NCBI GenBank assembly: GCA_964199315.1
Contig: OZ116712.1
Coordinates: forward strand, 2,108,001-2,172,000
Direction: 5' to 3'
Length of the DNA stretch: 64,000 nucleotides
Source of the DNA: Orbicella franksi
Lineage: Eukaryota
Part shown: piece after piece, positions 12,101-63,053 of the stretch
Numbering within the stretch: the stretch's first letter is position 1
Layout of the letters: each line of letters starts with the position of its first letter
The notes under the pieces: generated by a model
Database searches by the model: none
Told to the model about the DNA's origin: nothing
What the model saw: only the letters and a program-made list of their open reading frames with translations
Made by a program: the position numbers and the translations under genes

Positions 12101-15100
12101 GTAACACTACACGTACTACTGAAATTTAATCAAAGCAAACACAATGTCTTAGCAGAACTTCACACAAGGTTGAACATTTTTTGTGCATGAATACAGCTGT
12201 CAGAAGAAGAAGCCCCATATGTATCCCCTTGAGCATCCCATAATAGCTATTTGAAATAATAACATTCAAAATGGCTGCCGTATCGGTAAAAAGATCTGAA
12301 AGATCACCTTTCTTTATTTGCGTGTGAAATGTCTTTTAAACTTAAATTTTACAAATGCTAGCAAAGTCTCAACGTTTTAGATGCGTGATTCGTGTCGTTG
12401 CGTGAAGCCTGGTAACAATTTTGATTTGAATATTTTTTTTTTACCCCGTTCCAGGCCCTTTGCTGTCCGCTCAGGAGAGCGTGGCATTGTTGACTCAGGC
12501 AGGCTTGTTCGATAATGCCTTCACAGTGGCTTTTCACTTTAATCTTCCAAAGGAAACAATATTTGAAGGACTAGCGTCAAGGTAGGCAATAAACAAGTTA
12601 AATATAGAGCTGTTTCCACTTGAGTGTGGAAAGAAATTCGCATTTGACTTGGTTTTTCATTACTACGCTAAACGATTGGCTTAAAAAAGCTATCACAGTT
12701 TGTCAACCAATCACGAGTAAAACTAAAACCAATCGTGACGCGTGTGCACACGTTTTCCCGCACTTCGCGTCAGCTACATGAGTTTGCTTCGCGTTCTGAT
12801 TTGTTCTCTGTATTGCCTTTGTGCCTTGTGATTGGCCATTTAGATTACGTTGGTTATAGTTTTATGACACTCGGCTGAAAACCGCTTTGTCCTACCGAAA
12901 GAAATTCGATCAAAACACGGCAAATTTTTGTGGGGGTGGATGAGGGGTTGCTTTTTGCTGCAGTATTGTTCCTTGTAAAGATAATTAATCCTTTGAATTG
13001 ATTCATGATTGGAATAAGGTAACTGCTGTACCGATAGAAAAAAGAATTGAATGTACGTTTAACAGTAACCTCCATGTAACTCAAAAAAAGTGCAGATGCA
13101 ATATTAGTATATGCGACGTATAAATGAACACCAAAGGAAATTGCACCGAAATATAAATCCACCGACTTTATTTAAATGAGAGGAAAACGGTACAGTTGGT
13201 CTGAACTAACGGTCAACGTCCTTTCAATACGGAAATATGTATGTTCCGTATGTATTCCATATGTATAGATCGGAAATATGAGCCTATTCCCTTTTTTCAG
13301 GAATCAAATAAAGCTCGAGCTACGCTCAGATTGGTTTCTTTTAGGGGTTTAATTCAAATGTTCAAACGAGAATCCCAACCTTTTCGTATAGGAGTTCCCT
13401 CCGCGTTCGAAATGTCTAACAAGAGGTGACAGAGTGAAGGAGTGATGGAGTCAAATCGCTCCACACACAACTACAACTCGGAAAAAAAATCGTTTCCAAG
13501 TTAAAAATGGGGTTGATCGAGCTCGTTTTTGAGTTGTAAGCGCTCAAAGCTAAACTTCAGGGTGTTTTTAGCAGGTCATACTGTTGCTATGGTAACTTAT
13601 TGTGTCACGAAATTGACACCAACATGTTCACTAATGACTGGGAAAATGTTTGATACCAGAGTGGTTATAATGACCCATCAAAATATACGTCTTGGAAACC
13701 CTTTTGGGCCACCTTTACTGACAACCGAGAGGAAATCGAAACTTGCCTTCTCGATGTGCTCCGTTCTGTATTTCGTTTCGTTTTTTATAAATGACGTTTA
13801 TCTTTGAACGGAGGATAAATGAAAAGGTAGAGTTTCTTATAAGTTAGCGTCCAATTCTCCGCGTATAAATACATTGCTTCTAAATGTTTCGAAATATTAT
13901 AAAGGAGGGATAATTAATGAAATTGCTTTTCATTTGAAATTATTTTCTCTGTGTGGACCTTATTTTGGGATGCGCTATTTGACTTTGTTACCCTTGTACC
14001 ACACTGATTGTAATCTGGAAAAAACTGAATTAACATTAAATTAAAATTAAATCGCACTGTCGGTCAGACTTGGCTTTTTACAGTACTACAATTATAGAGT
14101 TGGCAATGAACATGAGATAGAAAACTGACTAAAAACGGCGCTGTATTTTTTGTAGATGTCGTTCGAATCAGAAAGAGGATATAACGTCTAGTTTTACACT
14201 CTTTGTTTACATAACATTTGCCTTGCTGTCTTTACAACTGCCGCTCGAAGTTCGCGAAGACGCCAGCAATACAAAAAGGGATTGATGGACGAATTCATAA
14301 ATACTGCGGTATGAGCAAAGTTCCATTCTGTTTGCCAATCCTTGCCAGAGGTTGCAAAAACAGTTAATATAACATAAATAGGACAATAGCACAGGATTAA
14401 AGCGATGTAGAACAAGAAAATGTTGAATGCACTTCTTTTCAGTCGCGTCATGTTTAAGTTATTTTCAGCACTAGAGCTTTGCACTGCCTGTTGTTGAGCG
14501 TGGATCTGCGACTGATGCAAACGAACAATCAGATAAATTCTGATGTGAGAAAATGTAGAAATTATAACTAAAAGTATTGTACAAATGCTGAAAACAAAAC
14601 TGTGCAGACGTTTATTCCAGAAGAACAATCCTGATGCAAGGAAACTCAGTAACCATATAATTATTAAAGTATATTTAACACGGGATTCAGTCACTAAAGT
14701 AGCATATCTCATGTGATAGTGAAGAGCCAGAAATCGATCGACACTTAATGTTGTCATTGTCAAGAGAGAGACTCCACAAACGGAAAAAGACACTGTTACC
14801 ACGAGGTTGTTTAGTAATGGGTCTTTGGTAAGTTCCTTGGCAATAAAAAGCGGTTGAGCAATGAGACCAACGAGAAAATCTGAGACAGCAAGACTGTAGA
14901 GCATAATCATGTGCGTTGAGCGAATGGAGGGCGTTCTTATTATGGCGGCCAATACCAAAGCGTTGCCCAGAATGGATATGAGCATCAGTGGAGCGTTAAG
15001 AACACAGTTTATGATGATAACAGTTTCAGGAGTAGAGTTTTCTTCATTGTCTGAATGGTGGTTTGCCGATTCGTTGTTGTGTTCGTTCATCATCAACTTT

Positions 15101-18100
15101 TAAGTAACTGTGAACTCGTCAAACGATTTCAGTTTTTTTACACCTAAAAATGACCAAGCAATTCTTCTTTTCGTTTCCGCGAAAGCACGAAGCAAAGCTG
15201 AAGATTAGTGGAGAATCCCTGCGCCGTGAAAGCAACACAGTTTAGAACATTATCTAAAACATCGGTGATTCTTAATTATCTTCTCTTTTAGCTAAACGTT
15301 TTTCCGAAAGTGTGCATCAACCATTCATTCTTCTGATAAAAGCGACACCTGTTTATGGCGGCGGACATGGGCTTATAATGAGAATGTGATCCCAAATCTA
15401 ACTTGACGAGGGTTTGGTGAAAACGTCTGGTAATTTACTAAGTCGTTTTAGATAGAGGTTACTAAACATTTTTCATTGCTTTCCTTAATCATTAAGGGCG
15501 CTTAAAAACTATACGAATTGGAAAAACAGCTGAGTCGCAATTGGCGCGGGCAAGATTAAAACACAGTTATAAAAGCGACACCTGCTTATGACGACATGGA
15601 CTTGTAATGAGAATTTGATCCCAAATCTAACTTGACGAGGGTTTGGTGAAAACGTCTGGTAATTTACTAAGTCGTTTTAGATAGAGGTTATTAAACATTT
15701 TTCATTGCTTTCCTTAATCATTAAGGGCTCTTAAAAACTATACGAATTGGAAAAACAGCTGAGTCGCAATTAGCGCGGGCAAGATTAAAACACAGTTGTA
15801 AAGAAAATGAAATTGAAGTTTGTATTTATTGTTAGGACAAGCCTACGCGAGATCAAACTTCAACAGATCTTATTTAGATTTTTTTCTCTCTTATTCGCGT
15901 TTCTAGGTAATATTCAAACAGATGTTTTTCTTTTCCAATCCATCATTTACTGCACGGTGAATTATGGATGTTCAAAAGGAAAGAAATTTATTGGAAAGGT
16001 AACGTTAGTCGGTCGAATTTGATCAAATTAAAACTTTAAAAATTGTATGCGCACAAGTTAAGCGAATTTGTTATTATATATTAAGTCAAATTATTGTCGC
16101 ATTTTGATTGGTTGTCTCGTACGATCTATCGGAGGACGAAAGATAGGCACATAGATGACGTCATTAACATATTGTTTTAGCTCTTACCACATTTTGACGT
16201 TATCTGTGATCTTTTACTGAACAGACGCAGGGCAACATGGAATCTATTTGTTAAGTAGACCTTGGTTTATTCAGTTAAAGAAAGAGTAACTAGTTTTGTA
16301 CGCTCTGTTTACATAACATCTGCCTTACTGTCTTTACAACTGCCGCTCGAAGTTCGCGAAGACGCCAGCAATACAAAACTGGATTAATGGAAGAGTTCAT
16401 AAATACTGCGGTATGAGCAAAGTTCCATTCTGTTTGCCAATCCTTGCCAGAGGTTGCAAAGACAGTTAATATAACATATATAGGACAATAGCACAGGATT
16501 AAAGCGATGTAGAACAAAAAAATGTTAAATGCACTTCTTTTCAATCGCGCGATGTTTAAGTTATTTTCGGCGTTGGAACTTTGTACTGCCAGTTGTTGAG
16601 CGTGGATCTGCGACCGATGTTTACTAACAATTAGATAAACTCTGATGTAAGAAAAAGTGGAAATTAAAAGACAAATTATCGCAGAAATGCCGAAAAGAAA
16701 GCTGTGTAGACGCTTATTCCAAAAGAACAATCCTGATGCAAGGAAACTCAGTAACCATATAATTATTAAAGTATATTTAACACGGGATTCAGTGACTAAG
16801 GTTGCATATCTCATGTGATAGTGAAGAGCCAGAAATCGATCAACACTTAATGTTGTCATTGTTAAGACTGAGACTACACATACAGAAAATGCCACAGTTA
16901 CCACCAGGTTTTTTAGCAATTCCTCTTTGGTGATGACTTCCTTGGTAATATAAAGCGGTTGAGCAATGAGACCAACAAGAAAATCTGAAACAGCGAGACT
17001 GCAGAGCATAATCATGTGCGGCGTTGAACGAATGGAAGGCGTTCTTATTATGGCGGCCAATACCAAAGCGTTGCCCAGAATGGATATGAGCATCAGTGGA
17101 GCGTTAAGAACACAGTTTATGATGATAATAGTTTCAGGAGTAGAGTTGTCTTCATTGTCTGAATGTTGGTCTATCATTCTGAAGCTTAAAAGTAACCAAA
17201 TGATTTTTCCTTTCGTCCTGGCGTTAAGCGAAAGTCTTAATTAAATGTGGAGACGCCAATGTCAAGAGAACAACACAGCTCAATTCATTCACAAAAACGG
17301 GTTTTCATTCTTCCGTTTGTCATTTGCGGTACAGCTCATTATGAAAGTAATTATGGATGCGAGCTTTTACTGATATTATTGAACGTTTTTAGGCTAAAAA
17401 CTCGGCGAACAACTGTCAAAACTTGCCCTTTATCAATAGGGACGCTAAGTGCGTGAAATCAGGACAGTTTTTATTCATTTTCAAAAAAGAACTTCAATTC
17501 CAAATTAGTTCTTCCAGCTGACGTTTTAGAGAACTGTGTTGTCAACTATTCATATTTTCCGAATAAGCGACACTTGTACTTCTTTTTGCGAGATTGGCAC
17601 TTGACTAATTAGAACTGCAGGTTGTAACGTCAATGTAGAGTGGTTTTTCATTTGATTGACGAAAGAAATTTGCGTTTGCCTTGGTTTTACTACGCTACGT
17701 GATTGGCTTAAATAATGCACGCCATTTTTTCGTCCAATCAGAAGTAAAATCAAATCCAGTCGTAACTCGCTCGCACACGTCAGCACACGTCAGCACACGT
17801 CAGCTACATGTAGTTGCTTCAAGTTTTGATTGGTTCAGTCGCTGGGTTGTCTGTGTGATTACTTTGGTTTTGGTTTTACGACACTCATTTCAAACTGTTC
17901 TAACAAGAAAGCGTTTCATTTAATGCCGGTTGGGTCGTTAATTTACGGAAGCCTTTTACGTGAAGATTGCCCGAAATTATTAAATCACATCACAGCCATT
18001 TTTTCCTTTGCTCAAATAATAAAAAAAGCTGCTGCTAGATCGAAGAAGCATATAAAAGTGAACGTTTGTTCAGAGAGGGTAAAAAAGTGGTAAACGCTGT

Positions 18101-21100
18101 AAAACTTCAAGTTTCCGCTGATTTTGGGACTAAGTTTAAATTATTTCAGCTTCAACTTTAGTGTAATAGTTTTTCTGTTTTTTTTTTTTTTTTACATTTC
18201 TTTCTTTCTTATAAAGTGCATAATGTACTATTGTGATGGTTTAGGTCGCAATTTTCCGCCAAACTGTACGTGTACTAATGTACTATTGTGATGGTTTACA
18301 ATTAGGCGGCCATTTTCCACCAAATTGCTAAGGAACTCGAAAGCGTTGCCCAAAATGGATATGAGCATCAGTGGAGCGTTAAGAACACAGTTTATGATGG
18401 CAATAGTTTCAAGAGTAAGGTTTTCTTCATTTTGTGAATGATTGTTTGCCGACCCGTTGTCCTCTTTCTCGCATTTGTTTATCATCATCGGGGTTACACC
18501 GTAAATATAAACCGTTGTCGTTGTCGAATTGCTTCCACACGCAAACGACGACGAAATATTTCTCGTTTTCGTTCCAGGGGAAAGAAAAATCAAGCCTGAT
18601 CTACGAATGTATAAGTAACTCCGTACAACGCCCATTAATTGTATTAAAAAAAAAAAACTGCTGGTGATTCTAACTTAACTTCTTATTAAGACGTTTTATC
18701 ATAAAATGTGTCCCATTATTGATTGTACGGGACAATCGACACTGACAGATTTTTCGAAAGAATGACATTTGATTAAAAAGAAGCGACTTTTTAAAGCAAT
18801 GAGCTATAAAAAATTGCGAAAGAAAACTTTTCTTAAAAACATTAAAGAAATTAAAGAAAAAAAACGGTTAAAAAATACACGACGTTTCGACGTTCTTGGA
18901 CCTCATTATCAAGTAAAAAAACGGTGTGAATATTCCATAAATACAACAAAAACAACAGTTCATTAAAAAGAAAGGTAACGTAAAAATATGCTACAAGTTA
19001 AACAAAGAGTTTAGCACTGAAGGAGTCACTCTGAGTGTTAAGGTTAGACCCCAGTTCTTTGACGTAAACGAGGCAGTTAAATTTCCCGTGGCGCTTCTTG
19101 AAAACACGCCAGCAGTACAAAAGTGGATTGATGGACGAATTCATAAATACTGCGGTATGAGCAAAGTTCCATTCTCATGTGTTTGCCAATCCTTGCCAGA
19201 GGTTGCAAAGACAGTTAATACAACATACACAGGAAAATAGCATATGATTAAAACGATGTAGAACAAGAAAACTTTTAGTGCACTCCTTCTCAATCGTGCA
19301 ATATTCAAGTTATTTTCGGCATTGGAACTTTGCACTGCATGTTGTTGGGGCTGTATCTGTTACTTATGTTTACGAACAATTAGATAAATTTTGATGAAAT
19401 AAAGGGCAGTAAAAGCAGCTAAAAGAAAGCTGTGTAGACGGTCATTCCAAAAGTAGAAACCTGATGCAAGGAAACTCAGTAGCTATATAAATACTACGAA
19501 GCCTTGAACACGGGATTCCGTCAATAAAGTAGCATATCTCATGTGATAGTGAAGAGTCAGAAATCGATCAACGCTTAATGTTGTCATTGTTAAGAGAGAC
19601 ACTCCACAAACGGAAGAAGCTACTGTTACCACGAGGTTGTTTAGCAATGCTTCTTTGGTTAGGTCGTCGGCAATGAAAAGTGGTTGAGCAAAGAGACCAA
19701 CAAGAAAATCTGAGCATAATCATGTGCGGCGTTGAGCGAATGGAAGGCGTTCTTATCATTGCGGCCAATCCCAAAGCGTTGCCCAGAATGGATATGAGCA
19801 TCAGTGGAGCGTTAAGAACACAGTTTATGATGGTAATAGTTTCAGGAGTGCAGTTTTCTTCATGGTCTGAACTTTGGTCTATCATTCTGAAGCTTAAAAG
19901 TGACCAAGTGAGTTTTCCCTTTTGGTCCTGGCAAATGTGGAGACGCCAATATCGTGAGAAAATCACAGCTCCATTCAATCACCAAAACAGCTTTTTATTC
20001 TTCCGTTGATGTCATTTTCGGCAGAGTTCATTGTGAACGTGATTCTGAATTTGAGCTTTTACTGGTATTAATGAATGCTTTATGGCTAAAAAACTCGACG
20101 AACATCCTAAAAAAACTTGTCCTTTATCAATAGGGACGCTAAATGCGTAAAAGCAACACAGTTTTGTACGTTTTCAAAAAGGAACTTCAATTCCAAATTA
20201 ATTGCCCTAGCTGACGCTGCAGAGAACTGTGTTATCAACTATTCATATTTTCCGAAAAAAGCGACACTTAAACTACTTTTTGCGAGATTCGCACCGGTCT
20301 AATTACAATGGCGGGTTGTAATGTCAATACAGACAGGTTTTCACTAGGTAATTTGCACTTGCCTTGGTTTTTTATTACTACGCTACGTGATTGGCTTAAA
20401 AATTCACGCCACTTTTTCATCCAATCAGAAGTAAAATCAAATCCAATTAAGTCTCGCTCGCACATGTCAGCACATGACAGCTGAATGACTTGCTTCAAGT
20501 TTTGATTGGTTCACTTGATTTAGTGTGATTACTTTGGTTTCGGTTTTACGACACTCGTTTGAAAATTGTTCTTACTAGCGTTGATTTAATAATGGGTAAT
20601 TAAGTTACTGAGGCCTTTTAGGTGAAGATTGCCTAAATTTATTCAATTACATTCGAGCCATTCAGTAATTGTTTTGCTCAATTAATAAACAAGCTGCTGT
20701 TAGGTTGAAGAAGCATAAAGGTGACTATTTTTGATTTGTTCAGAGAGGGTAAAAAAAACCCAGCAGTAAACGTGTTAATATGTATTTAAGTTTTTGCTGA
20801 TTTTGGGACTAAATTTAAATTTCAGCTTCAACTTTAGTGTCATGTTTTCTCTTTTTTTTTACTTTCTTTCTTTTTTCTTTTATGAAATGCATAATGTACT
20901 ATTGTGATGGTTTCGGCGGCCATTTTCCCCCAAATTGCTAAGGAGTAAACTTTAATAGTTGATGGATTAGTTTATAAATAACGTCAATTAATTATTCTTG
21001 GCGAGTGTAGCGAGGGTGAGCCGGTTGTACGTTTGTGCATTTTGCAAAACGTGGAATACCTTCTGGCTATCACAGAGATATTTATATCACAGAAGACACC

Positions 21101-35567: not shown

Positions 35568-35614
<47 letters not shown>

Positions 35615-46682: not shown

Positions 46683-46727
<45 letters not shown>

Positions 46728-47538
46728 GAGCACTTTTCATACAAACTTGAATCTTACATGTATCTGGTAAAAAATTCAGAAATTCTGTTGTTCCTTAAGT
46801 TTTCGGTAATTATAATAGTAATAATAATATCAAAATAATAATAATAATAATAATGATTTATTATTATTATTAACTTAAGGAACAACAGAATTTCTGAATT
46901 TTTTACCAGATACATGTAAGATTCAAGTTTGTATGAAAANNNNNNNNNNNNNNNNNNNNNNNNNNNNNNNNNNNNNNNNNNNNNNNNNNNNNNNNNNNNN
47001 NNNNNNNNNNNNNNNNNNNNNNNNNNNNNNNNNNNNNNNNNNNNNNNNNNNNNNNNNNNNNNNNNNNNNNNTTTTAACTTATGGTGCCGAGTTCAATCCG
47101 TGAGCCTAGGGCAGTCATGAGTCTGCTGGATTACTTGATGGATAGAGTCCTCCTAAGTATGTGAGCAGTTCCAAGGACGGTCTTCTGTAGCTCTGTTATT
47201 CTAATATTGCCTGGGATCTTGCCGATGTAGTTTTCTGTTCCCTTCTTGACAAGCCCGAAAGCTCCAATGATCACTGGGACAGTTGTTTTCATTCCCCACG
47301 TTTTCTCGATTTCAATCTCAAGATCCTTGTACTTTGTGAGTTTTTCCATTGTTTTCAAGGAGGTGTTCCTTTCTGTGGGGATGGACATATCGATAAGCAG
47401 ACAGGTTCTTTCCTTCTTGTCTTTCACCACTATGTCTGGTCTGTTTGCTTTTATCTCTTTGTCGGTTTGGATTGGCATGTCCCAAAGTATAGTCGCTGTT
47501 TGGTTTTTTGTCACAGTAGCTGGTTCATGTTCGTAGTG

Positions 47539-47583
<45 letters not shown>

Positions 47584-50500
47584 GTTATTACCGATAGTGA
47601 CGTTGAAACCCAGGAGGGAGCCATTATTTAAACACTGTTGAAATAGGTTTTAATAGTTTATTTCTTCTTTTACTTACTTTTACCTTGTATATACCTCATT
47701 TATAAAAAAAAAAAAAAAGTAGTAGTAGTAGTAGTATTAGCATTAGTTTTTTTTTTTTTTTTTATTATTGTTGTTGTTGTTGTTGTTGTTGTTGTTATTG
47801 TTATTGTTATTGTTATTATTAAAACGCCAGCGGCTGTTTTCAGTAAACTATTAATTCAAGATGACACTGGACGAGCCGCAGGACACACCGATAGTTCGTC
47901 TCATAGTCCTTCCCATATTTATACTAGACGGATGATCCGTCTTGACGGATGATCCGTCTCTAGTATAAATCGGGCCAGCTTGTGTAAGGATATACATAAC
48001 TTGTAAATGCAATCGGAATGCTATGAGCTGAAGACGGTTTCTATGGTTGGTTTTCATTTAAAACTTGTCACATACAATTTAAAAAGAAAACTAAAAAGCA
48101 AAGTTCATCTTGTACGAGATCTTATTTATGGATCGATTTAACATCGCGAGGCCTCCTAGGTCCTGCAAATGACGTTTATTTCTTGTTTATTTACAAATCT
48201 TCGTCATTACAGAGCTAACAACAAGAGATTTAAATCACCTAGGGAGAAAGTAAAAATGACTATCTAACTGAATTCCGTTCGTATTTTATTTTGTCCAGAA
48301 AGAAGATAACTAGTTTTCTTCTGTTTGTTTACATAACATCTGCTTTGCTGTCTTCAAAACTGCCGCGCGAAGCTCGCGAAGACGCCAGCAATACAAAAAT
48401 GGATTGATGGACGAGTTACTAAATACCAAACTATAGACAAATGTCCATTCTGTTTGCCAGTCTTTGTCAGAGGTTCCATACCGAATTGACAAAACATACA
48501 ACGGAAAATAACATACAGTTAGAACTATGTAGAAGACGAAGGTATTCATTGCACTTCTTTTTAATCGCGTTATGTTTACGTTATTTGCGGCGTCAGAACT
48601 TTGCACTGCCTGTTGTTGAGCGTGAATTTGTAACTGATGTCGACGAACAATACGACAAATTCTGACGTAAGAAAACGCTGAAATTTGAAGGCATGTGACA
48701 ATAAGAACGCCAACAAGAATGCTATATACACGCTCATTCCAAAGTCCGAAACCAGATACAAGGAAACTAATCAACCATATAATTACCAAAGTAAATTTAA
48801 CACGGGATTCAGTCACTAAGGTAGCATAGGTCATGTGATAGTGAAGAGCCAGAAATCGATCCACAGTGATGGCTGTTATTGTCAACAGAGAAACTACACA
48901 AAAAGAATACCCTGACATCACTGCAACATGGTAGACGTAACGGCGTTTCAAGAGTAGATCACCAATATAAATCGGTTGAGCAATGAGACCAACAAGAAAA
49001 TCTGAAACAGCGAGACTGCAGAGCATAATCATGTGCGTTGAGCGAATGGAAGGCGTTCTTATTATGGCGGCCAATACCAAAGCGTTGCCCAGAATGGATA
49101 TGAGCATCAGTGGAGCGTTAAGAACACAGTTTATGATGATAAAAGTTTCAGGAGTTGAGTCGTCTTCCTTGTCTGAATGATGGTTTGCCGATCCGTTGTA
49201 TTTGTTGGTGTAGCTCATCGTTGATGTTTAAGATCAGCTTCTAAAGTTGTCTTAGAACTAAAAAGTGGACCAAGCAATTTTCCTTTTTCGTTCAGCTAAA
49301 AATATGTCAAAACTGTACAAACAGTGGATACCTAACACCATGAAAACATCACAGTTTAATGAAATTTCTAACAGAGACCTTGATTCTAAATGAGTCTTTT
49401 TGCTGACGTTTTCCGGAGTTATGTTCATTTTATTATTCATCTTTTGTTTTTTGTTTTGTTTTTTCTTGAAAAAGCGATCTTGGTTTCTGGCGAGAGTGCC
49501 ATATAATTAGAGTTGGACTTGCATTGTAAATATAATTCAAGTGCGTTTGATTAAACTTTTTCATTTACACAGGTTGCCTTTTTAGATGGAAATTGCTTTA
49601 CATTATTAAGCTGTAATAGAACTTTTCATTGCTTTCTTATTCATGGAGCAGCCTTAGTATTGGCTGAGGACCTCTAGAAGTCAATGCTGGAAAGTAAACA
49701 TCGCTCCTTTAAATAAAGTGCAGTTAAAACTATTGAGGAGAAATTTTAATTTTGTATGACTAACGAAACAAAAGAAAAATAAAATAACAGTTTTGCTCTC
49801 TCACGTGAGCTTCCTTAGGTCGACGAAATAACGAAATAACTAAAAATAAGAAAAAGCAGGTGTTGTTTGAGCTTCGTCTCTAGCAACGCCACCATTTACC
49901 TCTATTATCTCTAAGCAAATCGAGAAAATTTTCATTGCGTCTCGATATAACATCACAAAGCTCTGCAAGAATCAATTGTGCCTTATTATATTTGCAATTT
50001 TCTATGGTTAGTGCACTAAGAATATGAGCTATAAAACGAACTGAGAACTGACCGTGAAAACGAAAGATTGCTTTGTGGCTGTACTCTGGTTATTTTTCTT
50101 TTCGTTCAGAAAAAAAAATGTCTAGTGTTCTTCTGTTTGTTTACATAACATCTGTCTTGCTGTCTTTAGAACTGCCGTTCGAAGCTCACGAACACGCCAG
50201 CAATACAAAAATGGATTGATGGACGAATTAAGGAATGTTAAGGTAGAAGCAAAGTTCCATTCTATTTGAAAATTCCACTGTGAGATTGCATTCACTGTTA
50301 ATACAATGTACAATGGAAGATAACATACAATCAAAGCTATGAAGAAGACGAAAGTGTTCCTTGCACTTTTTTCCACTTTTTTCCGCGCTATGTTTAAGTT
50401 GTTTTCCGTGTCCAAACTTTGCACTGCCTGTTGTTGAGCGTCAATTTGTAGTTGATGCCGACGAGCAATTTGAAAAATCCTCATGTAAGATAGTGTTGAA

Positions 50501-53500
50501 ATTATAAGACAAATGAGAATAACAAGGCTTGTACTAAGGTGTTGTGCACTTGTATTCCAAAACTTCAAACACGATAAAAGGAAACTAAACAACCATATAA
50601 TTATTATAGTATATTCAACGCGGGACTCAGTCACTAAAGTAGGATATCTCATGTGATAGTGAAGAGCCAGAAATCGATCGACAGTGATAGCTGTTATTGC
50701 TATAAGAGACACCACAGATAAAGAACTCACTGTTATTTTCCAAACAAGGTGAATAGAACCGTCTTCCGTAAGTTCTTTAGCAATATAAATCGGTTGAGCA
50801 ATGAGACCAACAAGGAGATCTGAAACAGCGAGACTGCAGAGCATAATCATGTGCGGTGAGCGAATTGAAGGCGTTCTAATTATGGCGGCCAATACCAAGG
50901 CGTTGCCCAGAATGGATATGAGCATCAGTGGAGCGTTAAGAACACAGTTTATGATGATAGTAGTTTCAGGAGTCGAGTTGTCTTCATTGTCTGAATGACG
51001 GTCTGCCGATCCTTTTTGGAGTTCGTGGTTACTTGGGTTGTCCATGATCAACGTTTAAGATTTAAATTCTTGATTTTTGAGCAGGAAAGTGCAGACAATA
51101 ATTTTTCCTTTTCATTCCACCGAAAAGGACGTAATTAAACTGGTCAACAGTGAAGACGCCACCTCCTCGAATCCAACGCAGTTAAGCCGGTGCATCGTCT
51201 TAATCAAACTTGCTCCTCCACCTTACATTTTTTCTGAATGTGTTGAGTCCCCTTTTAATCTTTTCCAAAAAAGCGACAGCGGTTTGTGCCGAGATTGGCA
51301 TGTAATTCATGTACTCAGAATTGGTCCAACAATGCAAATATAACTGAAAGATGGTGTGATTCAATTTCGAGTGATTTTTTGTGTTCACTCTATTCAGTAA
51401 TAACACAGTTTTTCATTTCTTCTCAGCCCTTGTTCATCAAGCAATTTTTTGACGCATTGAAAAACACTTACGAGACAATACTAGCTCATACCGGGAAAGT
51501 AAAGAAAAAGATTAGTTTTAAACAAAGAAAAAATGAAGTTTGTGCTGATTGTTTGGACAACAGTATAAAATCTACTTAGCTCTAACTCCTACAGAGTAAA
51601 CATCGCTTGAAGATGCATTTGGAAGTTTTATAGAGGCGGGCTTCTTCTATTTGGGTCTCACTTAAAATTCATGACATACGAAATATCAATGAAAATAAAA
51701 TTGAAAACAACGTTTTATATCCTAGGTGATCTTCTTTAGGAATCTGATCTGCAACTTCTCTCAATATTTCAATACACTGAGGAAAATTTCAGTGCACCTC
51801 GATCTAACTTGACGAAGTCTCTCTCTTTGCATTGTGTTAATATTTAATTTCGTTCAAAAAATGATTACTAGTTTACTTCCGTTTGTTGACATAATACCTG
51901 CTTTGCTGTTTTTACAATTGGCGCACGGAGTTCACGAAGACGCCAGCAATACAAAAATGGATTGATACAAGAGTTGCTGAACACTAGGGTAGAAGAAAAT
52001 TTCCATCCTATCTTCCAGTCCTTACTGACAGACGAAACTATATACACCGGAAAATAACAAATAATTAAAACTATGTACAAGACAAAAGTGTTCATTGCAC
52101 TTCTTTTCAATCGTGTTATGTTTAAGTTGTTTTCAGCGTCAGAACGTTCCACTGCCTGTTGTTGAGCGTTAATGTGTAGCTGATGCCGACGAACAATGCG
52201 ATAAATTCTGATGTAAGAAAATGTGGAAATTATAAGACAAATGACTATAAAAACGCCTATAAGAAAGATTTGTACACTTATTTTCCAAAAATAAAAAAAT
52301 GGTACAAGTAAACTAATCGACCATATGATTATTAAAAGATATTTAACACGGGATTCTGTCACTAAAGTAGCATATCTCATGTGATAGTGAAGAGCCAGAA
52401 ATCGATCCACAGTGATGGCTGTTATTGTCAGTAGAGAAACTCCACATAAGAAAGGTCCTATAATCTTCCAAACGTAATTAACGTAACGGTGTTTCGTAAG
52501 TTGTTGAGCGATATAAATCGGTTGAGCAATGAGACCAACAAGGAGATCTGAAACAGCGAGACTGCATAGCATAATCATGTGCGGCGTAGAGCGAATGGAA
52601 GGCGTTCTTATTATGGCGGCCAATACCAAAGCCTTGCCCAGAATGGATATGAGCATCATTGGAGCGTTGAGAATACAGTTTATGATGGTGACAGCTTCTC
52701 GAGTAGAGTTGTCTTCATTGTATGAATGATTTTCTCCCGAGCTGTTGTCGTGTAGGTCGATATTGTTCATTATCGAAACTGATTATGAATTCGTAGCGTC
52801 AGTGGTAAATTCTTGATTTAAGCTAAAATGTTGTCAAAAGTATGTTCTTTTCGTTCCGGCGAAAAGCCTGATGTCAGAAAACTGGTCAAATACTGAAGAC
52901 GCCTGTACTATGATAACAACACAGTTTAGCTCTGCACCGGTTTGTGTTTCATTGTGAATATAACCCAATAGCGTTTGATTAAACTGCGGTTGATTTTTGG
53001 GAGACTTTTCAAGATGGAAATTACCTTCTATTATTCAATGCAACCTTTCATTTCCTCTATTATTCATCAAGCACCCTGCTAATGATGCCCGCCGATCTTC
53101 GAGTTATTACAACCTCAAGGAGAGCAAACAACAGCAATAAAGCATGCTAAAATTGACGATTGTGCTAAGTTTTGAGACAATGAAATAAAAATTATCTTCA
53201 ACTTAGTCAGGTTATTTTGTCTGTCAATCGAATGCTCAATCAGTACTGATAACAACAAACTTTATTTCTCCCATTCAGTCCACATACCGATATTTACACT
53301 TAATTAATAAAGAGATGGGGGGTGCGGGCTGGCTTCGGAAATAACTACAAAGTCAAAGGGGGCAGGCAGGCAGTCAGTAATAGTGAACTAGTTATTGCCC
53401 TCTGTTTTACATAATAGGTTGCCATAGCAACAGTATAACCTGTAAAACGCCCTGAATTTTGGCTCAATGCTTGTTGCTTATAGCTCAAAAACGAACTTGG

Positions 53501-55933
53501 TGGCCTCCTTTTTTGTTGTTTAGAAAGTTGAGTTTTTTGTTTGGCAAGATTTGTATAAATGGTAAAAAGCCACTTCAAAGTTTTGAAAATTTAAAGCATT
53601 TAAAGTTAAACACATCCTATCTACGGATAATGTCGCTTAAATTCATAAAGACTTTTTTCCCATCACTTCTGACATATTACTTGCTGATATCAAACGTTCT
53701 GTTTGTTGCAGGTGCGTCAAATTATCGTACCAAGGAACTGGCTTAACAAGGTATGAATTCAGATGCTTTCAAGGGGCGTGTTCTATCCCACCAAACAATT
53801 CCGAAATGTAGGAAAGGGAGCGAATGGTAAAGAAATTAACCGCGAACAGCTCAACCCCAAATTTCCGAAAAATTTGTTTTCGAAATTCTGGACAAAAATT
53901 TCCTTTCAACGTCGCGTGAATGACCACTTTTCCGGAAAAAAAAATTCTTTCCAATTTTGGTTGAATAGAAAAAAAGTCAAGACAGTTAGTTCAGCTTTAG
54001 CCACAGAAAATAGAAAAGCGTGGGTGTTTCATAAATTACACACTCACACGCGCTTTATATTAAAACAACAACAACAACAACAGCAACCCGGAGGTGTTTA
54101 GAAATGATCGAGTCTCCCGCGCAGGCGTGGTTAAAAACGAGATAATAGATAGAAGCATGAAAGAAACACCAAGTCCTCCAAACATATGCGTGGGGAGACG
54201 AATAATTCGTTAGTAACAACGCTCTGTGAAACTTGTCGGATATACTTTGGGAAAAACAAGCTGCTATTCGTTAAACGTTAGCTTTAAAAAGTTTCTTTGT
54301 TTATCGCAGAAGAGATGAGGAGGACGCGTGGGACTGGATCCTATCTAATGATCTTGGCGAGGCACAGGTCTCCGGATATAAAAGGTACCGCGCTGACTGG
54401 TCACTAGATCTCTCTGTCTGATGTCTTGCAATCCCGGTTAAGTTTAGTCCCCGTTAACTAGATGAGACATTCTTGTATTTGATTGTGTCTATAGCTATTG
54501 AGCTATAACACTTTCTTTTAATAAAATATAAACTTTATTTCTTCACCATCTCTAAGAATACAGTTTTGATGTTGCATGCACTTTTGATGTTTTCAGCGTG
54601 GCAGACCAGGCATGGCAGCTGTTGAAGTTGTACCTCGACAGACTAGGCTCACGTGATGGACACGTGTATTACCGATGTGTCACCAGTAAACTGCTGTCAG
54701 CTGGAGCGGCTCTACCCACGTGGCTGGTGAATGATTATAAGGTGAGGAGGCATACACGGACTATCAGCTCTCGTGAGCTGATAGTCACAAAGTTGACGCA
54801 AATTTATTGAGACTTGTTTTCTGAAACCGCTCTGCCTTTCTTGTACTTTAAAATAGGGAGAAGAAACGGGTCAGGTTTAACGGTTTTAAGTTGGAATTAC
54901 TTTCTCTAATGCTTCTTTTTCAGCGGGTTAATGCTTCTGAACTACTTCGCTTGTACATCAACTACGACCTACTCTTAGAAGCCGTGATGTTGGCTTTGGA
55001 ATACATCGAAGCAGTGTTAGGAAATGGCAAGGAATACTTCGGACTCAAGGTGATTCATACTCTAATTTTCAGCCTTTCTTGGGGAAAAATGTGTGATTTC
55101 TTTCACTTATTCGTGCGGTACTGACAGTCGATTATTTGACTCCCAGAATGCTCTGCACGCCACCAGTCCCAGTGTGTGGCTCCCATACGCGTCTCTGGAT
55201 CAACTGTTGGTGTTGTTAAAAGATGTCCAAACTGACTCGGAGCTAGCTAAGGTAGGCCGTCTTCAGTTTTACCACGAGCTTTCATAGAGCCTTTTTACTC
55301 CTCGATGAAGGTAGCGAAGAACTCTCCTTATCATATGGCTAGCTCCGTGAATGAACAAGATGAACCGCATCCTGCGCTATGATTGGCTACCCGAGCGGGC
55401 AAGATGGCGTCAACTTGCCGGTTTGGGATTACCTGCTGTGTCCGACAACAAAATAGTGTTCTTTTCTACATTGAATGATTCCTTTATTGACCAAGTTTTT
55501 TCTGTCAAGATGGCTGGATTTATCTTCATTCTTTTTTTTGCGTGTTTAAGGACCTCCACTCCGTCTCGGTCCATAAACATGCAAAGAAGATCTTGGCCAA
55601 TATCCAGCCATCTTGACCACACGCTTGGTCAATAACCCGTATTTACTTAAGTCAGGTATTTCTCTATGGTGTATATCATGATGATTTGGTTTCAATCAAG
55701 ACGTCTCCCCTGAGATGTCGAGATCGCAGTGTTTTTTTTAAAACTCAAGCTTTATCGTCCAAGCATTTTAGATATTAATTACGTGGTTCGTTTTTCTGCA
55801 GGCGCGAGACGAACTTACAGAGCTACTCCAAAGATTCCACGACCAAGTTGTCACAGTGTCACATGACACGACGACTGCAGAGCTGACACGAGCTCAGCGG
55901 AAGCACGCAGCAGAATCGATTCCAATACAATGA
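191..55933 (+). CDS. NUP160: Nuclear pore complex protein Nup160, 3' portion (5' exons lie upstream of the window); 27 exons, 979 aa here
   Basis: Exons traced by AG/GT boundaries with consistent phases: 191-295, 438-503, 915-1014, 1485-1546, 2192-2295, 2816-2881, 4391-4491, 5024-5190, 5968-6101, 6600-6667, 7284-7455, 8052-8257, 8564-8646, 8976-9071, 9537-9631, 10057-10153, 10534-10639, 11272-11345, 11430-11522, 11703-11898, 12455-12581, 53712-53750, 54310-54384, 54597-54741, 54924-55049, 55147-55251, 55802-55933 (sum 2940 nt, ends TGA). Peptides match recalled vertebrate Nup160: CWTKFYSYVLQY, ESNLKQLATLEISD, IFKHQLELGHN, HSYYDLLYAFHVFRGNYRKA, CYLAAMNALRL, SPKR, QAGLFDNA, ELLRLYINYDLL, VWLPYASLDQLL. 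Confidence 0.95.
651..887 (+). mobile_element. tRNA-derived SINE (family also at about 5255-5480, 31830-31985 on -, 62091-62385 and 63331-63625)
   Basis: B-box GGTTCGAGCCC, then the shared core TTGTGTTCTTGGGCAAGACACTT..CCACCCAGGTGTATAAATGGGTAC..CATCCCATCCAGGGGGGAGTAG. Confidence 0.8.
1680..2143. mobile_element. MITE with CAGTGGAACCC TIRs
   Basis: CAGTGGAACCC at 1680 and GGGGTTCCACTG-TA ending at 2143. Confidence 0.65.
6775..7140. repeat. 15-bp-unit minisatellite (TTTGG(C/A)AATTCAAGA)n, with a short related patch near 8780-8825
   Basis: About 20 degenerate units, in a NUP160 intron. Confidence 0.85.
7456..8051 (+). other. U12-type (minor spliceosome) GT-AG intron in NUP160
   Basis: Donor GTATCCTTG at 7456; branch-like TTTCTTAAC at 8020-8028; A-rich acceptor without a polypyrimidine tract (AACTAAAAAAAAAATAACAG). 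The frame joins correctly (..DLI/WP..). Confidence 0.85.
10388..10490. repeat. (GACA)n-type microsatellite
   Basis: ACAGACAGATAGACTGACTGACAGACAGCCAGGCAGAC... Confidence 0.85.
10911..11180. mobile_element. Penelope-like-element-derived palindromic insertion with a hammerhead-like motif in each arm
   Basis: Inverted arms of about 105 bp (10929-11037 and 11081-11181). Flanked by a 13-nt near-duplication TTTCCTTCAATTT/TTCCCTTCAATTT that is single-copy in uninterrupted copies of the host repeat (about 22390 and 25820). Confidence 0.7.
12605..12890. repeat. Dispersed repeat of about 280 bp (further copies at about 17630, 20330, 23960, 27400; reverse copies at about 21090, 24735, 29595)
   Basis: Shared GATTGGCTTAAAAA..CCAATCAGAAGTAAAA..CAGCTACATG..GATTACTTTGGTT..ACGACACTC. 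Confidence 0.75.
14194..15096 (-). CDS. GPCR-1: class A (rhodopsin-like) GPCR, melanocortin/MECA-like, 300 aa
   Basis: Seven hydrophobic segments with GN (TM1), LAVSD (TM2), DRF (TM3), CYCP (TM6), NPFLY (TM7) and helix 8 WRLRELR; single coding exon. Confidence 0.92.
   Translation of the reverse strand: MMMNEHNNESANHHSDNEENSTPETVIIINCVLNAPLMLISILGNALVLAAIIRTPSIRSTHMIMLYSLAVSDFLVGLIAQPLFIAKELTKDPLLNNLVVTVSFSVCGVSLLTMTTLSVDRFLALHYHMRYATLVTESRVKYTLIIIWLLSFLASGLFFWNKRLHSFVFSICTILLVIISTFSHIRIYLIVRLHQSQIHAQQQAVQSSSAENNLNMTRLKRSAFNIFLFYIALILCYCPIYVILTVFATSGKDWQTEWNFAHTAVFMNSSINPFLYCWRLRELRAAVVKTARQMLCKQRV
15338..15797. repeat. Tandem duplication of about 230 bp upstream of GPCR-1
   Basis: AAAAGCGACACCTG...AAGATTAAAACACAGTT occurs twice head-to-tail (about 15338-15570 and 15571-15797). 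Confidence 0.85.
16290..17177 (-). CDS. GPCR-2: class A GPCR, 295 aa
   Basis: Same motifs; TM6-TM7 nearly identical to GPCR-1, while the N-terminus and upstream DNA are of the GPCR-4/5/6 type. Confidence 0.92.
   Translation of the reverse strand: MIDQHSDNEDNSTPETIIIINCVLNAPLMLISILGNALVLAAIIRTPSIRSTPHMIMLCSLAVSDFLVGLIAQPLYITKEVITKEELLKNLVVTVAFSVCVVSVLTMTTLSVDRFLALHYHMRYATLVTESRVKYTLIIIWLLSFLASGLFFWNKRLHSFLFGISAIICLLISTFSYIRVYLIVSKHRSQIHAQQLAVQSSNAENNLNIARLKRSAFNIFLFYIALILCYCPIYVILTVFATSGKDWQTEWNFAHTAVFMNSSINPVLYCWRLRELRAAVVKTVRQMLCKQSVQN
18341..18488 (-). pseudogene. GPCR-3: 5' fragment (N-terminus plus TM1 only)
   Basis: MMINKCEKEDNGSANNHSQNEENLTLETIAIINCVLNAPLMLISILGNA, then homology stops abruptly at a junction with the spacer repeat ending ..CCAAATTGCTAAGGAA. 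Confidence 0.85.
19095..19885 (-). pseudogene. GPCR-4: frameshifted pseudogene
   Basis: Starts MIDQSSDHEENCTPETITIINC. About 17 nt of TM2 are missing (ATGCTC|AGATTTT versus ATGCTCTGCAGTCTCGCTGTTTCAGATTTT), there is a 5-nt insertion near 19180, and homology is lost just after NPLLYCWR. The core is GPCR-1/2-like. Confidence 0.88.
21302..21896. mobile_element. 595-bp MITE with TA TSD (Tc1/mariner-type)
   Basis: TIRs CAG(T/G)GAAAC(T/C)TGTATTAAGCGGAC; TA on both sides; the paralogous empty site AACATACATGCATTGG is at about 25328. Confidence 0.85.
22619..23506 (-). CDS. GPCR-5: class A GPCR, 295 aa (probable start ATG at 23506)
   Basis: The ORF track extends to 23650, but paralog GPCR-6 starts at the equivalent Met. 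All class A motifs are present. Confidence 0.9.
   Translation of the reverse strand: MMDQHSNNEDNFTPETVTIINCGLNAPLMLISILGNALVLAAIIRTPSIRSTPQMIMLCSLAVSDFLVGLIAQPFYIAQQLTDDRGLVYHVWRQLGSSLCVVTLLTITAITVDRFLALHYHMRYATLVTQSRVKYVLIVIWFISFLVSVFDVWNESIYQFTVGSIIAISLLISTFSYIRIYRIVRRHQLHIDAQQQAVQSFNAGNNLNIARLKRSAMNTFVFYITLIICYFPMYVLLTLHGLSFLLWQRESEFATTLVLSNSCINPFLYCWRLRELRTAVVKTARKMLCKETEEN
24913..25296. mobile_element. 384-bp MITE with TWA-type TSD (PIF/Harbinger-type); truncated copy at about 29772-29875
   Basis: TIRs AGCC..CT(A/T)CACGAG(C/G)AATTTTTATGTGA; GTA/TTA flanks; the empty site CGAATTATCTTCG is at about 21261. Confidence 0.75.
26049..26936 (-). CDS. GPCR-6: class A GPCR, 295 aa; recent duplicate of GPCR-5
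   Basis: About 7-8 aa differences from GPCR-5 by eye; flanks are also duplicated with a period of 3430 bp. Confidence 0.92.
   Translation of the reverse strand: MIDQHSNNEDNFTPETVTIINCGLNAPLMLISILGNALVLAAIIRTPSIRSTPQMIMLCSLAVSDFLVGLIAQPFYIAQQLTDDRGLVYHVWRQLGSSLCVVTLLTITAITVDRFLALHYHMRYATLVTQSRVKYVLIVIWFISFLVSVFDVWNESIYEFSVGSIIAISLLISTFSYIRIYRIVRRHQLHIDAQQQAVQSFNAGNNLNIARLKRSAINTFVFYIALIICYFPMYVLLTLQGLSFILWQRESEFATTLVLSNSCINPFLYCWRLRELRTAVVKTARKMLCKETEEN
27835..28125 (+). mobile_element. Decayed 3' end of a CR1/L2-group LINE
   Basis: Frameshifted LKDL..RSMAYSLRG ... GRHSFKYFACKTWNSVP.NFRT.PTL.GFKR, typical of the C-terminal tail of CR1/L2-type RT proteins. Confidence 0.6.
28181..28221 (-). 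ncRNA. Minimal type I hammerhead ribozyme motif (U3-A8 variant), Penelope-type
   Basis: - strand reads GCC-UUGAGAA-U-GGUGUCA(CGA)UGACGCC-GAAA-CGUC-GGC: stem I 3 bp, stem II 7 bp, palindromic stem III ACGU, GUC cleavage triplet. Confidence 0.65.
28288..28422. repeat. 135-nt near-perfect hairpin centred on a CUGAUGA...GAAA core
   Basis: 67-bp arms with about 3 mismatches and a 1-nt loop at 28355. Confidence 0.9.
29924..30841 (-). CDS. GPCR-7: class A GPCR, 305 aa
   Basis: Core is GPCR-5/6-like (QQLT.D.G..YHVWR.LGSSLCVV; EFATTLVLSNSCINP), with a different N-terminus and upstream DNA. Confidence 0.92.
   Translation of the reverse strand: MTMNNMDKNNNKSTTHHSDQEENATAAIVIINCVLNAPLMLISILGNALVLAAIIRTPSIRSTHTIMLCSLAVSDFLVGLIAQPFHIAQQLTEDHGFAYHVWRLLGSSLCVVSLLTITAINVDRFLALHYHMRYATLVTQSRVQYTLITLWLISMVVSVFDVWNESVYRFTVGAVIAISLVFSSFSYIRIYRIVRRHQLHINAQQLAVQSFNAGDNLNIVRLKRSAMNTFVFYTALIICYFPMCVLLTLHGLSYLHWQRGSEFATTLVLSNSCINPFLYCWRLRELRTAVVKTARKMLCKETEEN
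32327..33247 (-). CDS. GPCR-8: class A GPCR, 306 aa
   Basis: GN, LAVSD, DRF, CYFP and NPFLY motifs; intact ORF. Confidence 0.92.
   Translation of the reverse strand: MMINNTYKHNNGSAGRYSDNEVNSTPETITIINCVLNAPLMLISILGNALVLAAIIRTPSIRSTSHMIMLCSLAVSDFLVGLIVQPVYIAQVLTDDRLFLHVVKQIGFSLCGASLLTMTVITVDRFLALHYHMRYAALVTESRVKYALIIIWLTTSFAIGFYFLNERVHSFLSGIITIICLLISTFFYIRIHRIVRRHQLQIHAQQQAVQSSDAENNLNIMRLKRSALNTFVFYITLTICYFPMYVLLTLHGLSIKDWKTEWQFAFTAVFMNSSINPFLYCWRLRELRTAVVKTARQMLCNQTEEN
34678..35065. repeat. Nested MITE-like repeats (duplicated at about 42090-42485; inner family also at about 3340-3630 and 3975-4260)
   Basis: Outer TIR AAGAAATAGAAAACATGTCCTGTGTCTCTATCGAGTT / AACTCGATAGACACACAGAGAACATGTTTTCTACTTCTT surrounds an inner repeat containing CTCACTATCT..AGATAGTGAG. 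Confidence 0.65.
35569..35677. repeat. (TTA)n microsatellites; empty counterpart of the retrotransposon cluster
   Basis: (TTA)15 at 35569-35613 and a second run at 35658-35677, between flanks that recur at 42950 and 47820. Confidence 0.9.
36167..37075 (-). CDS. GPCR-9: class A GPCR, 302 aa
   Basis: Intact ORF with class A motifs. Confidence 0.92.
   Translation of the reverse strand: MSNTNKYNRSANHHPDNEDNSTPETFIIINCVLNAPLMLISILGNALVLAAIIRTPSIRSTHMIMLCSLAVSDFLVGLIAQPIYIGDLLLKRRYVYHVAVMSGYSFCVVSLLTITAITVDRFLALHYHMTYATLVTESRVKFTLVIIWLISFLVSGFGLWNERVYSILVGVLIVTCLQISAFSYVRICRIVRRHQLQIHAQQQAVQSSDAANNVNITRLKRSAMNTFVFYIVLTVCYFPLYVLSIRYGTSDKDWQTEWTFVYSLVFSNSSINPFLYCWRLRELRAAVLKTAKQMLCKQTEEN
37881..38810 (-). 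CDS. GPCR-10: class A GPCR, 309 aa
   Basis: Intact ORF; ICL3 insertion RKKVEKSARNTF; CYLP and NPFLY. Confidence 0.92.
   Translation of the reverse strand: MIMDSPGNPGLKKASTDRNSNNEDNSTPETTIIINCVLNAPLMLISILGNALVLAAIIRTPSIRSTHIILLCSLAVSDLLVGLIAQPIYIANELTEDDSIYLVWKITVSSFSVVSLIAITAITVDRFLALHYHMRYATLVTESRVEYTIIIIWLFSFLLSCLKFWNTNAQHLSMGLVILICLIISTLSHMRIFQIARRHQLQIHAQQQAVQSSVAENNLNIARKKVEKSARNTFVFFIALIVCYLPLYIVLTVNAISQWNFQIDWDFASTFIFLNSSINPFLYCWRVRELRTAVLKTARQMLCKQTEGH
39763..40671 (-). pseudogene. GPCR-11: chimeric receptor (GPCR-8 5' end, GPCR-14 core) with a premature stop removing helix 8 and the C-tail
   Basis: TGG>TAG at 39838-39840 directly after NPFLYC. The frame beyond still reads RLRELRAAIVKTAKQVFCQQTEVN to the ancestral stop at 39763-39765. 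Confidence 0.85.
43101..46671 (-). mobile_element. 5'-truncated R4/Dong-clade non-LTR retrotransposon (RT C-terminal part, CCHC knuckle, restriction-like endonuclease), split by a DNA transposon
   Basis: GIFQGDSL (2-nt frameshift), MDDLKTYA, YKYLGV, CRMCNKYDETIDHIVSGC, RPDIVIKD..KFIDM..EKLSKYKDL, ending LQKITLLGTAHILRRVLS* at 43166. The 5' end abuts (TAA)n. Confidence 0.88.
44323..46108. mobile_element. Kolobok-like non-autonomous DNA transposon (1786 bp) nested in the retrotransposon
   Basis: TIRs of about 43 bp (AGTGCAGCTAACCCCAAAATTTT..CGCTAAAACGAATCT); TTAA on both sides (44319-22, 46109-12); AG..CT termini. Removing it restores RT frame ..TYSFN|IIDWKM... Decayed THAP-like remnants on the - strand at about 45540-45857 (GC-SN, RWxDFV, ICSADF, LPT). 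Confidence 0.8.
46734..46939. repeat. Perfect 68-bp inverted repeat running into an assembly gap
   Basis: 46734-46801 is the exact reverse complement of 46872-46939, with a TAA-rich spacer. Confidence 0.8.
47072..47539 (-). mobile_element. Second, shorter 5'-truncated R4/Dong-clade fragment (endonuclease domain plus 3' UTR)
   Basis: ILWDMPIQTDKEIKANRPDIVVKDK..LIDMSIP..EKLTKYKDLEIE..LQKTVLGTAHILRRTLSIK*. The 5' end abuts (TAA)n at 47540. Confidence 0.85.
48310..49218 (-). CDS. GPCR-12: class A GPCR, 302 aa; duplicate of GPCR-9
   Basis: Identical to GPCR-9 from PETF onward; differs only in the N-terminal tail. Confidence 0.92.
   Translation of the reverse strand: MSYTNKYNGSANHHSDKEDDSTPETFIIINCVLNAPLMLISILGNALVLAAIIRTPSIRSTHMIMLCSLAVSDFLVGLIAQPIYIGDLLLKRRYVYHVAVMSGYSFCVVSLLTITAITVDRFLALHYHMTYATLVTESRVKFTLVIIWLISFLVSGFGLWNERVYSILVGVLIVTCLQISAFSYVRICRIVRRHQLQIHAQQQAVQSSDAANNVNITRLKRSAMNTFVFYIVLTVCYFPLYVLSIRYGTSDKDWQTEWTFVYSLVFSNSSINPFLYCWRLRELRAAVLKTAKQMLCKQTEEN
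50122..51051 (-). CDS. GPCR-13: class A GPCR, 309 aa; duplicate of GPCR-10
   Basis: Same length and RKKVEKS insertion as GPCR-10, with scattered substitutions. Confidence 0.92.
   Translation of the reverse strand: MIMDNPSNHELQKGSADRHSDNEDNSTPETTIIINCVLNAPLMLISILGNALVLAAIIRTPSIRSPHMIMLCSLAVSDLLVGLIAQPIYIAKELTEDGSIHLVWKITVSSLSVVSLIAITAITVDRFLALHYHMRYPTLVTESRVEYTIIIIWLFSFLLSCLKFWNTSAQHLSTSLVILICLIISTLSYMRIFQIARRHQLQIDAQQQAVQSLDTENNLNIARKKVEKSARNTFVFFIALIVCYLPLYIVLTVNAISQWNFQIEWNFASTLTFLNSSINPFLYCWRVRELRTAVLKTARQMLCKQTEEH
51868..52770 (-). CDS. GPCR-14: class A GPCR, 300 aa; carries N1.50K
   Basis: Intact ORF; TM1 reads ILGKALV instead of ILGNALV; short ECL3 (SSVSKDW). Confidence 0.88.
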   Translation of the reverse strand: MNNIDLHDNSSGENHSYNEDNSTREAVTIINCILNAPMMLISILGKALVLAAIIRTPSIRSTPHMIMLCSLAVSDLLVGLIAQPIYIAQQLTKHRYVNYVWKIIGPFLCGVSLLTITAITVDRFLALHYHMRYATLVTESRVKYLLIIIWSISLLVPFFYFWKISVQIFLIGVFIVICLIISTFSYIRIYRIVRRHQLHINAQQQAVERSDAENNLNITRLKRSAMNTFVLYIVLIICYFPVYIVSSVSKDWKIGWKFSSTLVFSNSCINPFLYCWRLRELRAPIVKTAKQVLCQQTEVN

Positions 55934-56213
55934 CATTGATCGTGTAGTGTATAAAGTGTGAAACAGAACTGGAACAGATCTGTGTTGTGAGGAAAGACGG
56001 AATTCCGCGAAGAACTCATTCGTCTCGTTTATAGTCAATAGGCTATGTTCGTATTCTCGGTATTGGACTGGAACTAGCTTGTAACCGAGGCAAATGCAGG
56101 CAGTCTTTTTAAATGCAAATGACATTAATTTCTTTTCAAAAATATTCCCCCACATGAGCTTCCATTACAAGCTGGTTCCTCTCCAATAACGAGAATGGTA
56201 TTGATATGGCCTA

Positions 56214-57871: not shown

Positions 57872-57941
57872 CTGATCATTTCTTTTATAAATCTCGTTCG
57901 ATGATTCGTTCGCAGATCGGTGGCGCAGTGAGACAATCTTT

Positions 57942-63053
<5,112 letters not shown>

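Follow-up and report, generated by a model that had tools for sequence, protein, structure and literature searches.

An intron of about 41 kb in NUP160, an essential gene, encloses a series of GPCR loci that all lie on the opposite strand. This raises the question of whether NUP160 is indeed read as one gene through the whole array and, if so, how the receptors came to be there and whether the location matters to them. We put the probability at about 0.88 that in this stony coral the receptors are truly nested in a host gene, that the intron has grown by the multiplication of an intronless GPCR family and that the location is a historical accident.

The NUP160 transcript across the giant intron

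The window, i.e. the whole stretch of 64,000 nucleotides that was analysed, contains only the C-terminal two-thirds of NUP160. The human and Xenopus NUP160 chains matched on both sides of the giant intron; in the alignment, human residues 1210-1247 corresponded to the exon ending at 12581 and residues 1282-1330 to the exon 54597-54741. With tblastn, the NUP160 proteins of Porites, Pocillopora and Orbicella faveolata were collinear with 26 exon pieces (residues ~472-1455). The Orbicella protein, an isoform of O. faveolata, was the closest and was 95-100% identical on many exons of the window gene. The homology on both sides of the intron and the collinearity with full-length orthologues identify the host as NUP160, the outer-ring Y-complex nucleoporin.

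The giant intron has the splice sites AAG/GTAGG at 12581/12582 and TTGCAG/G at 53711/53712. When the exons were joined, the frame stayed open up to the stop codon at 55931-55933, and the translated splice product read ...TIFEGLASR/CVKLSYQGTGLTR/RDEEDAWDW... across the intron. The order of the pieces at this junction is identical in Pocillopora (...EGLASRCVKLSTHGSGLTRKTEEDAWDW...) and in the anemone Actinostola (...EGLTARCVRQSYNNGMTRAG...).

Splicing was followed in RNA mapped on 50100-55990, from three runs of poly(A) RNA and from metatranscriptome contigs of one data set; run X21 contributed no reads. Five poly(A) reads of run X24 had, immediately 5' of 53712, a 30-letter consensus equal to window 12550-12579. 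This consensus has a single match in the window, adjoining 12580-12581, and the AG at 53710-53711 is common to the intron end and to the last two exon bases (12580-12581). The mRNA therefore joins 12581 to 53712. Two raw-read runs and one contig run also showed GT..AG joints at 53750>54310, 54384>54597, 54741>54924, 55049>55147 and 55251>55802, so that RNA joints cover each intron from 12581 to 55802 and NUP160 is one continuous, expressed and spliced reading frame here. Transcription of the NUP160 pre-mRNA runs across the entire array, the 41 kb are removed as a single GT..AG intron, and the host junction 12581/53712 spans every GPCR locus.

The length of 41,130 bp, like the copy number, is as assembled and counts two gaps whose lengths are estimates. 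The second-largest gap between neighbouring NUP160 exon matches was ~1,507 bp, and the other introns in the window measure ~1.5 kb or less. A preliminary description of this DNA had claimed one intron of 41,130 bp (next largest 1,509 bp), a NUP160 frame that joins exactly across it, and 14 same-strand GPCR cassettes with a single coding exon, antisense to NUP160. All three claims were borne out, the last with 14 minus-strand loci of which 11 are intact. The coordinates are collected in Table 1.

Table 1. Features of the NUP160 locus in the window and in the second coral
Feature	Position	Strand	Remarks
NUP160 exon 5' of the giant intron	12455..12581	+	human residues ~1210-1247; donor AAG/GTAGG
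Giant NUP160 intron, GT..AG	12582..53711	+	assembled length 41,130 bp, with two gaps whose sizes are estimates
GPCR G01	14194..15096	-	intact 7tm_1 frame, whose first ATG lies a few codons within the ORF as listed
GPCR G02	16290..17177	-	intact
GPCR N-terminal fragment	18342..18446	-	35 codons, 74% identity to G04
GPCR pseudogene	19085..19885	-	at least 2 frameshifts, several stops
GPCR G03	22619..23506	-	intact; homology begins at ATG 23506, listed ORF extends to 23650
GPCR G04	26049..26936	-	intact; G03 98% identical
GPCR G05	29924..30841	-	intact; unique 5' sequence 30757-30786 present in RNA reads
GPCR G06	32327..33247	-	intact
GPCR G07	36167..37075	-	intact; near-copy of G10 (dS 0.015)
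GPCR G08	37881..38810	-	intact; G11 paralogue (dS 0.10)
GPCR G09	39766..40671 (ORF 39838-40671)	-	in-frame stop 39835-39837 after NPFLYC; G12 paralogue
Assembly gap 1	42970..43100	.	within retrotransposon-like DNA
Retrotransposon-like island between the gaps	43101..46939	-	ORFs 43166-44302 (weak zf-RVT), 46075-46491 (weak RVT_1)
Assembly gap 2	46940..47071	.	followed by a second retroelement tail 47131-47541, 65% identical to the first
GPCR G10	48310..49218	-	intact
GPCR G11	50122..51051	-	intact
GPCR G12	51868..52770	-	intact; NUP160 acceptor 942 bp away
NUP160 39-nt mini-exon (CVKLSYQGTGLT)	53712..53750	+	conserved in Pocillopora and Actinostola
Last five NUP160 exons	54310-54384, 54597-54741, 54924-55049, 55147-55251, 55802-55933 (stop included)	+	RNA reads join all
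Second coral: NUP160 3' exons (L002)	record ~157.5-161.3 kb		
Second coral: receptors (L002, L003)	record from 162.5 kb (L002), more up to ~217 kb (L003)	+	
Second coral: homologue of window 12476-13113 (L003)	record ~219.1-219.7 kb		

The receptors inside the intron

All 13 open reading frames of at least 200 aa within 12582-53711 are on the minus strand. Twelve of them match Pfam PF00001 (7tm_1) with 82.8-106.3 bits, where the curated cut-off is 30.5 bits; the thirteenth (43166-44302) is retrotransposon-like and gave only a weak zf-RVT match. When one receptor was used as a tblastn query, the same 12 were found together with the frameshifted copy and the N-terminal fragment, which makes 14 loci: 11 intact frames, one nonsense copy (G09), one frameshifted pseudogene and one fragment of 35 codons. 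In G09 the stop costs helix 8 and the tail, while the homologous sequence behind it is intact. The listed frame of G03 has a 48-codon upstream extension that is absent from the other copies in the alignment.

Each of the 12 frames contains VDRF, an E/DRY-type motif with a Y to F variant where TM3 ends, and NPFLY or NPVLY, corresponding to NPxxY in TM7. The alignment also showed the common DRF motif and NPFLY, a CYxP motif and the helix-8 region. Judged by the Pfam scores and these motifs, the loci are predicted to encode class A (rhodopsin-like) GPCRs. Solved class-A receptors (alpha-1B adrenergic, histamine H2, adenosine A2A/A2B, melanocortin MC3/MC5) aligned over TM1-TM7 with E values of 1e-17 to 1e-13, and the DRF of the DRY type, NPxxY and a helix 8 with Cys are shared features. 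This similarity is generic and indicates no specific bilaterian receptor type; RefSeq names such as 'histamine H2 receptor-like' are automatic.

Receptor RNA reads were sparse, and the libraries look unstranded. Thirteen reads of X23 and seven of X24 lay on the conserved 5' part of G11 and continued into the exact G05 letters 30757-30786. The samples that express NUP160 therefore also contain transcripts of G05 or of one of its alleles. We infer that the receptors are transcribed from promoters of their own; from unstranded libraries, the G05 reads show only that at least one receptor is expressed.

The second coral, the outgroups and the turnover of the array

The nesting was also found outside the window. 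L001, an N-free metagenome contig of 10 kb, matches window 51500-58500 with 98.6% identity over 7 kb. It carries two GPCRs and then the NUP160 3' exons on the opposite strand, and Pfam TPR_Nup160_C matches the corresponding NUP160 exon. A contig of 438,927 bp from a second coral shows 81-92% DNA identity to the window. Its loci are given in record orientation, the only one that makes NUP160 collinear. The orthologous intron measures ~58 kb there and holds at least 10 plus-strand GPCRs in the 42 kb covered by L002 and L003, two N-free loci that lie 21.5 kb apart. From the DNA of both species, we judge the nesting to be real and common to at least two corals.

The 20.4-kb NUP160 gene of Pocillopora verrucosa encloses no other gene, and its orthologous intron has only ~345 bp. 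In Actinostola, it has ~100 bp. A receptor search of the 30-kb NUP160 locus of Pocillopora verrucosa and of the 108-kb locus of Actinostola gave no match. The short, GPCR-free intron in these two outgroups argues that the nesting is derived, and with two array-bearing species and two outgroups sampled the array would thus be an insertion into a short intron. Alternatively, the array may have been lost in Pocillopora. In the search for relatives, the anemone NUP160 query found stony coral and a jellyfish NUP160 query did not.

How the array changes was examined by self-comparison, which revealed that blocks of one to three genes had been copied, with 90-95.5% identity. Between pairs of receptors, dS ranged from 0.015 (G07/G10) to ~0.55 and dN/dS from 0.12 to 0.6. 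A tree of the window receptors and those of L001-L004 contained at least six paralogue lineages common to both species. Species-specific sister pairs were also observed, G03/G04 and G07/G10 in the window and L002_10001/L003_1 in the second coral. The array thus contains tandem copies of differing age and species-specific duplicates, along with one pseudogene, one fragment and one nonsense copy, and the claim of the preliminary description that the receptors turn over by birth and death holds on the pseudogenes, the recent duplicates and the species-specific copies.

In blocks of the outward-facing loops pN/pS was 0.6-0.84, as against 0.2-0.35 in the inner and cytoplasmic parts. Purifying selection on the receptors is relaxed and they change most in the outward-facing loops, as is also the case in lineage-specific chemoreceptor-like families. 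The excess is compatible with an odorant-receptor-like chemosensory array, but is not specific to one.

The synonymous difference in the TM1-TM2 region was 0.05-0.2 versus 0.4-0.55 elsewhere. Between old paralogues it was lowered 3-8 times at alignment positions 63-122 and 153-182 (TM1-TM2 and the DRF region), for example at 26700-26870 in G04. The low values in the 5' third of the coding sequence suggest gene conversion or a constraint at the nucleotide level. In both species the same receptor lineage forms a near-identical pair many kb apart (36167-37075 and 48310-49218 in the window, L002_10001 and L003_1 in the second coral). The G07/G10 pair of the window combines its dS of 0.015 with flanks that differ by ~7%. 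Such a paired lineage in both species could mean that the gene was recently duplicated in each of them in parallel, or that two old copies are still being converted.

Origin and location of the array

In the reading that we prefer, one intronless class-A GPCR gene would have landed antisense in a NUP160 intron of ~0.1-0.35 kb, by DNA duplication or retroposition. As is established for intronic insertions, the poly(A) signals of an antisense guest do not appear in the host transcript. The antisense orientation would have kept the poly(A) and splice signals of the receptor out of the host transcript, so that the insertion was tolerated. Unequal crossing-over and segmental duplication would then have raised its copy number on the spot, one to three genes at a time. 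With retroelements inserting and some gene conversion along the way, the intron would have swollen more than 100-fold. Every member would have received its orientation by tandem duplication; because this keeps the orientation of one antisense founder, all members are antisense, and the layout is one event copied rather than 14 independent choices. That the array lies in NUP160, of all genes, is most probably an accident of history without special function.

A different explanation is that selection maintains the intron as a protected nursery in which receptors are born and die, or that the host and its guests influence each other through transcriptional interference or shared chromatin; for example, transcription of NUP160 would silence the receptors, or firing of the receptors would damp NUP160. 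We regard this as unlikely. The nesting predates the split of the two species, and at least six old paralogue lineages have been kept inside the intron. Interference-driven divergence of expression occurs in nested genes of Drosophila (PMC5174743), and the nested TipE cluster has been kept for a very long time (PMC3240667). However, persistence is expected for any array in this place because an exit requires a rearrangement that breaks NUP160. The pseudogenes and the nonsense allele accumulated inside the intron as in any array, and reads of NUP160 and G05 came from the same libraries. In the second coral, close relatives of the intronic copies were found outside NUP160: L004 (record 79-100 kb) holds three receptors ~60-80 kb past the NUP160 3' end that are very close to the intronic copies of the same species, and copies therefore also settle outside the intron. 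The three start at 6516, 9992 and 18727, and a reverse-transcriptase ORF of 1,189 aa (RVT_1, 12754-16323) is inserted between two of them. The family also forms many arrays in corals (PMC10236652). The nursery and the interference that the preliminary description had proposed thus have no support: close copies lie outside NUP160, GPCR arrays are frequent in corals generally, and nothing marks the intron out as a special site.

Still less probable, in our estimate, is that the nesting is functional in the sense that Pol II passage along NUP160 through 41 kb of antisense receptors, or chromatin common with the constitutively active housekeeping gene, determines the set of receptors that can fire in a given cell. 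If this were true, a ubiquitously transcribed host gene would be the regulator of a chemoreceptor-like array, which would explain the retention in at least two coral species.

The rhodopsin-like GPCR is the commonest domain among the coral-amplified orthogroups, with 34 of 192 (Noel et al. 2023, PMC10236652). The tandem rhodopsin-like families of scleractinians described there, which corals amplify in tandem more often than any other family, are among the systems closest to the array in the NUP160 intron. The word 'nested' does not occur in the main text of that paper, whereas in NUP160 a whole array lies within one intron of another gene. The closest precedent is the TipE cluster of insects, where paralogues inside one intron of an unrelated host were dated on the phylogeny and then kept (Li, Waterhouse & Zdobnov 2011, PMC3240667). 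Both are clusters of paralogous genes in one host-gene intron. The TipE cluster is stable and has about four functionally defined genes, whereas the NUP160 array has 12-14 receptors with fast turnover and pseudogenes, and its copy number varies between close species. Nested genes usually arise by insertion into an already long intron (Assis 2016, PMC5174743). As described there, the guests in NUP160 are short young duplicates in an intron. Unlike in that route, the outgroup NUP160 intron has ~100-345 bp and was made long by its guests, and the guest is an array instead of a single gene. In a literature search for NUP160 with nested intronic GPCRs, NUP160 was absent from the ten best of 340 matching papers.

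The locus is an ordinary, though large, case of nested genes. Its size, the essential host and the more than 100-fold growth of the intron are notable; the concept is not new, and the array leaves current concepts unchanged. Its value is that of a clean and datable example in which a short intron of an essential gene (~0.1-0.35 kb) grows more than 100-fold by a self-multiplying guest family and the host stays unbroken. It also lends itself to the study of how a housekeeping host and numerous antisense guests interfere with one another, as an experiment set up by nature. For the annotation of corals it means that gene callers can split NUP160 or lose its last six exons at such loci. GPCR arrays are a major and unstudied share of the lineage-specific gene content of corals.

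The assembly gaps bear on the arrangement itself. Both lie between G09 and G10, clear of every receptor ORF and NUP160 exon, and thus have no bearing on any reading frame. Minus-strand retroelement-like ORFs occupy the 3.8 kb between the gaps and the DNA to the right of gap 2. The unique DNA to the left of gap 1 (39481-42969) is 89.8% identical to 32053-35552, and the DNA from 47801 is 95.5% identical to 35658-37856. In the paralogous unit the corresponding points of the two flanks are only ~105 bp apart, and retroelement DNA fills the difference. Since the flanks are collinear with this unit, the scaffold join is as expected for a tandem copy with retroelement insertions, and mis-scaffolding across the gaps appears unlikely. 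To the left of the gaps, unbroken sequence links the exon ending at 12581 to G01-G09; to the right, it links G10-G12 to the exon starting at 53712. For this reason the nesting holds whatever the gaps contain.

An assembly artefact, with GPCR contigs mis-scaffolded into NUP160 or with 47.8-52.8 kb as an uncollapsed haplotype of 35.7-40.7 kb that inflates the copy number, is the least probable explanation of all: the two N gaps do fall exactly between two similar three-gene blocks and the coding sequences of G07 and G10 are 99% identical, but the RNA reads connect the exons flanking the intron, L001 and the second species have the same layout on N-free stretches, and each group of receptors joins its NUP160 exon independently of the gaps, whose flanks follow the paralogous unit. 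Haplotype duplication was rejected for the two blocks, which diverge by 4.5-10% overall with unequal dS (0.015, 0.10 and 0.13) and of which only one has the stop, in G09 and not in G12.

Some minor features were observed elsewhere in the window, where an Rfam scan of the whole sequence gave nothing at gathering thresholds. On the last NUP160 intron (55252-55801), especially at 55371-55410 and 55568-55618, metatranscriptome contigs piled up to a summed word depth of ~4,000-5,400, and the poly(A) reads matched there in short pieces only, with loose ends on both sides. The intron contains an inverted repeat at 55484-55635 and has no Rfam match. The pile-up looks like a common short MITE-like repeat that is present in many transcripts and not like a feature of NUP160. 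On the plus strand at 62541-63050 lies a Ser/Asn/Pro-rich open frame of 170 aa with no Pfam match. An exon 3' of NUP160 (58021-58242, plus strand) has a weak match to an Ssb-like OB-fold (E 0.002) and may belong to a gene of the SSB/NABP type.
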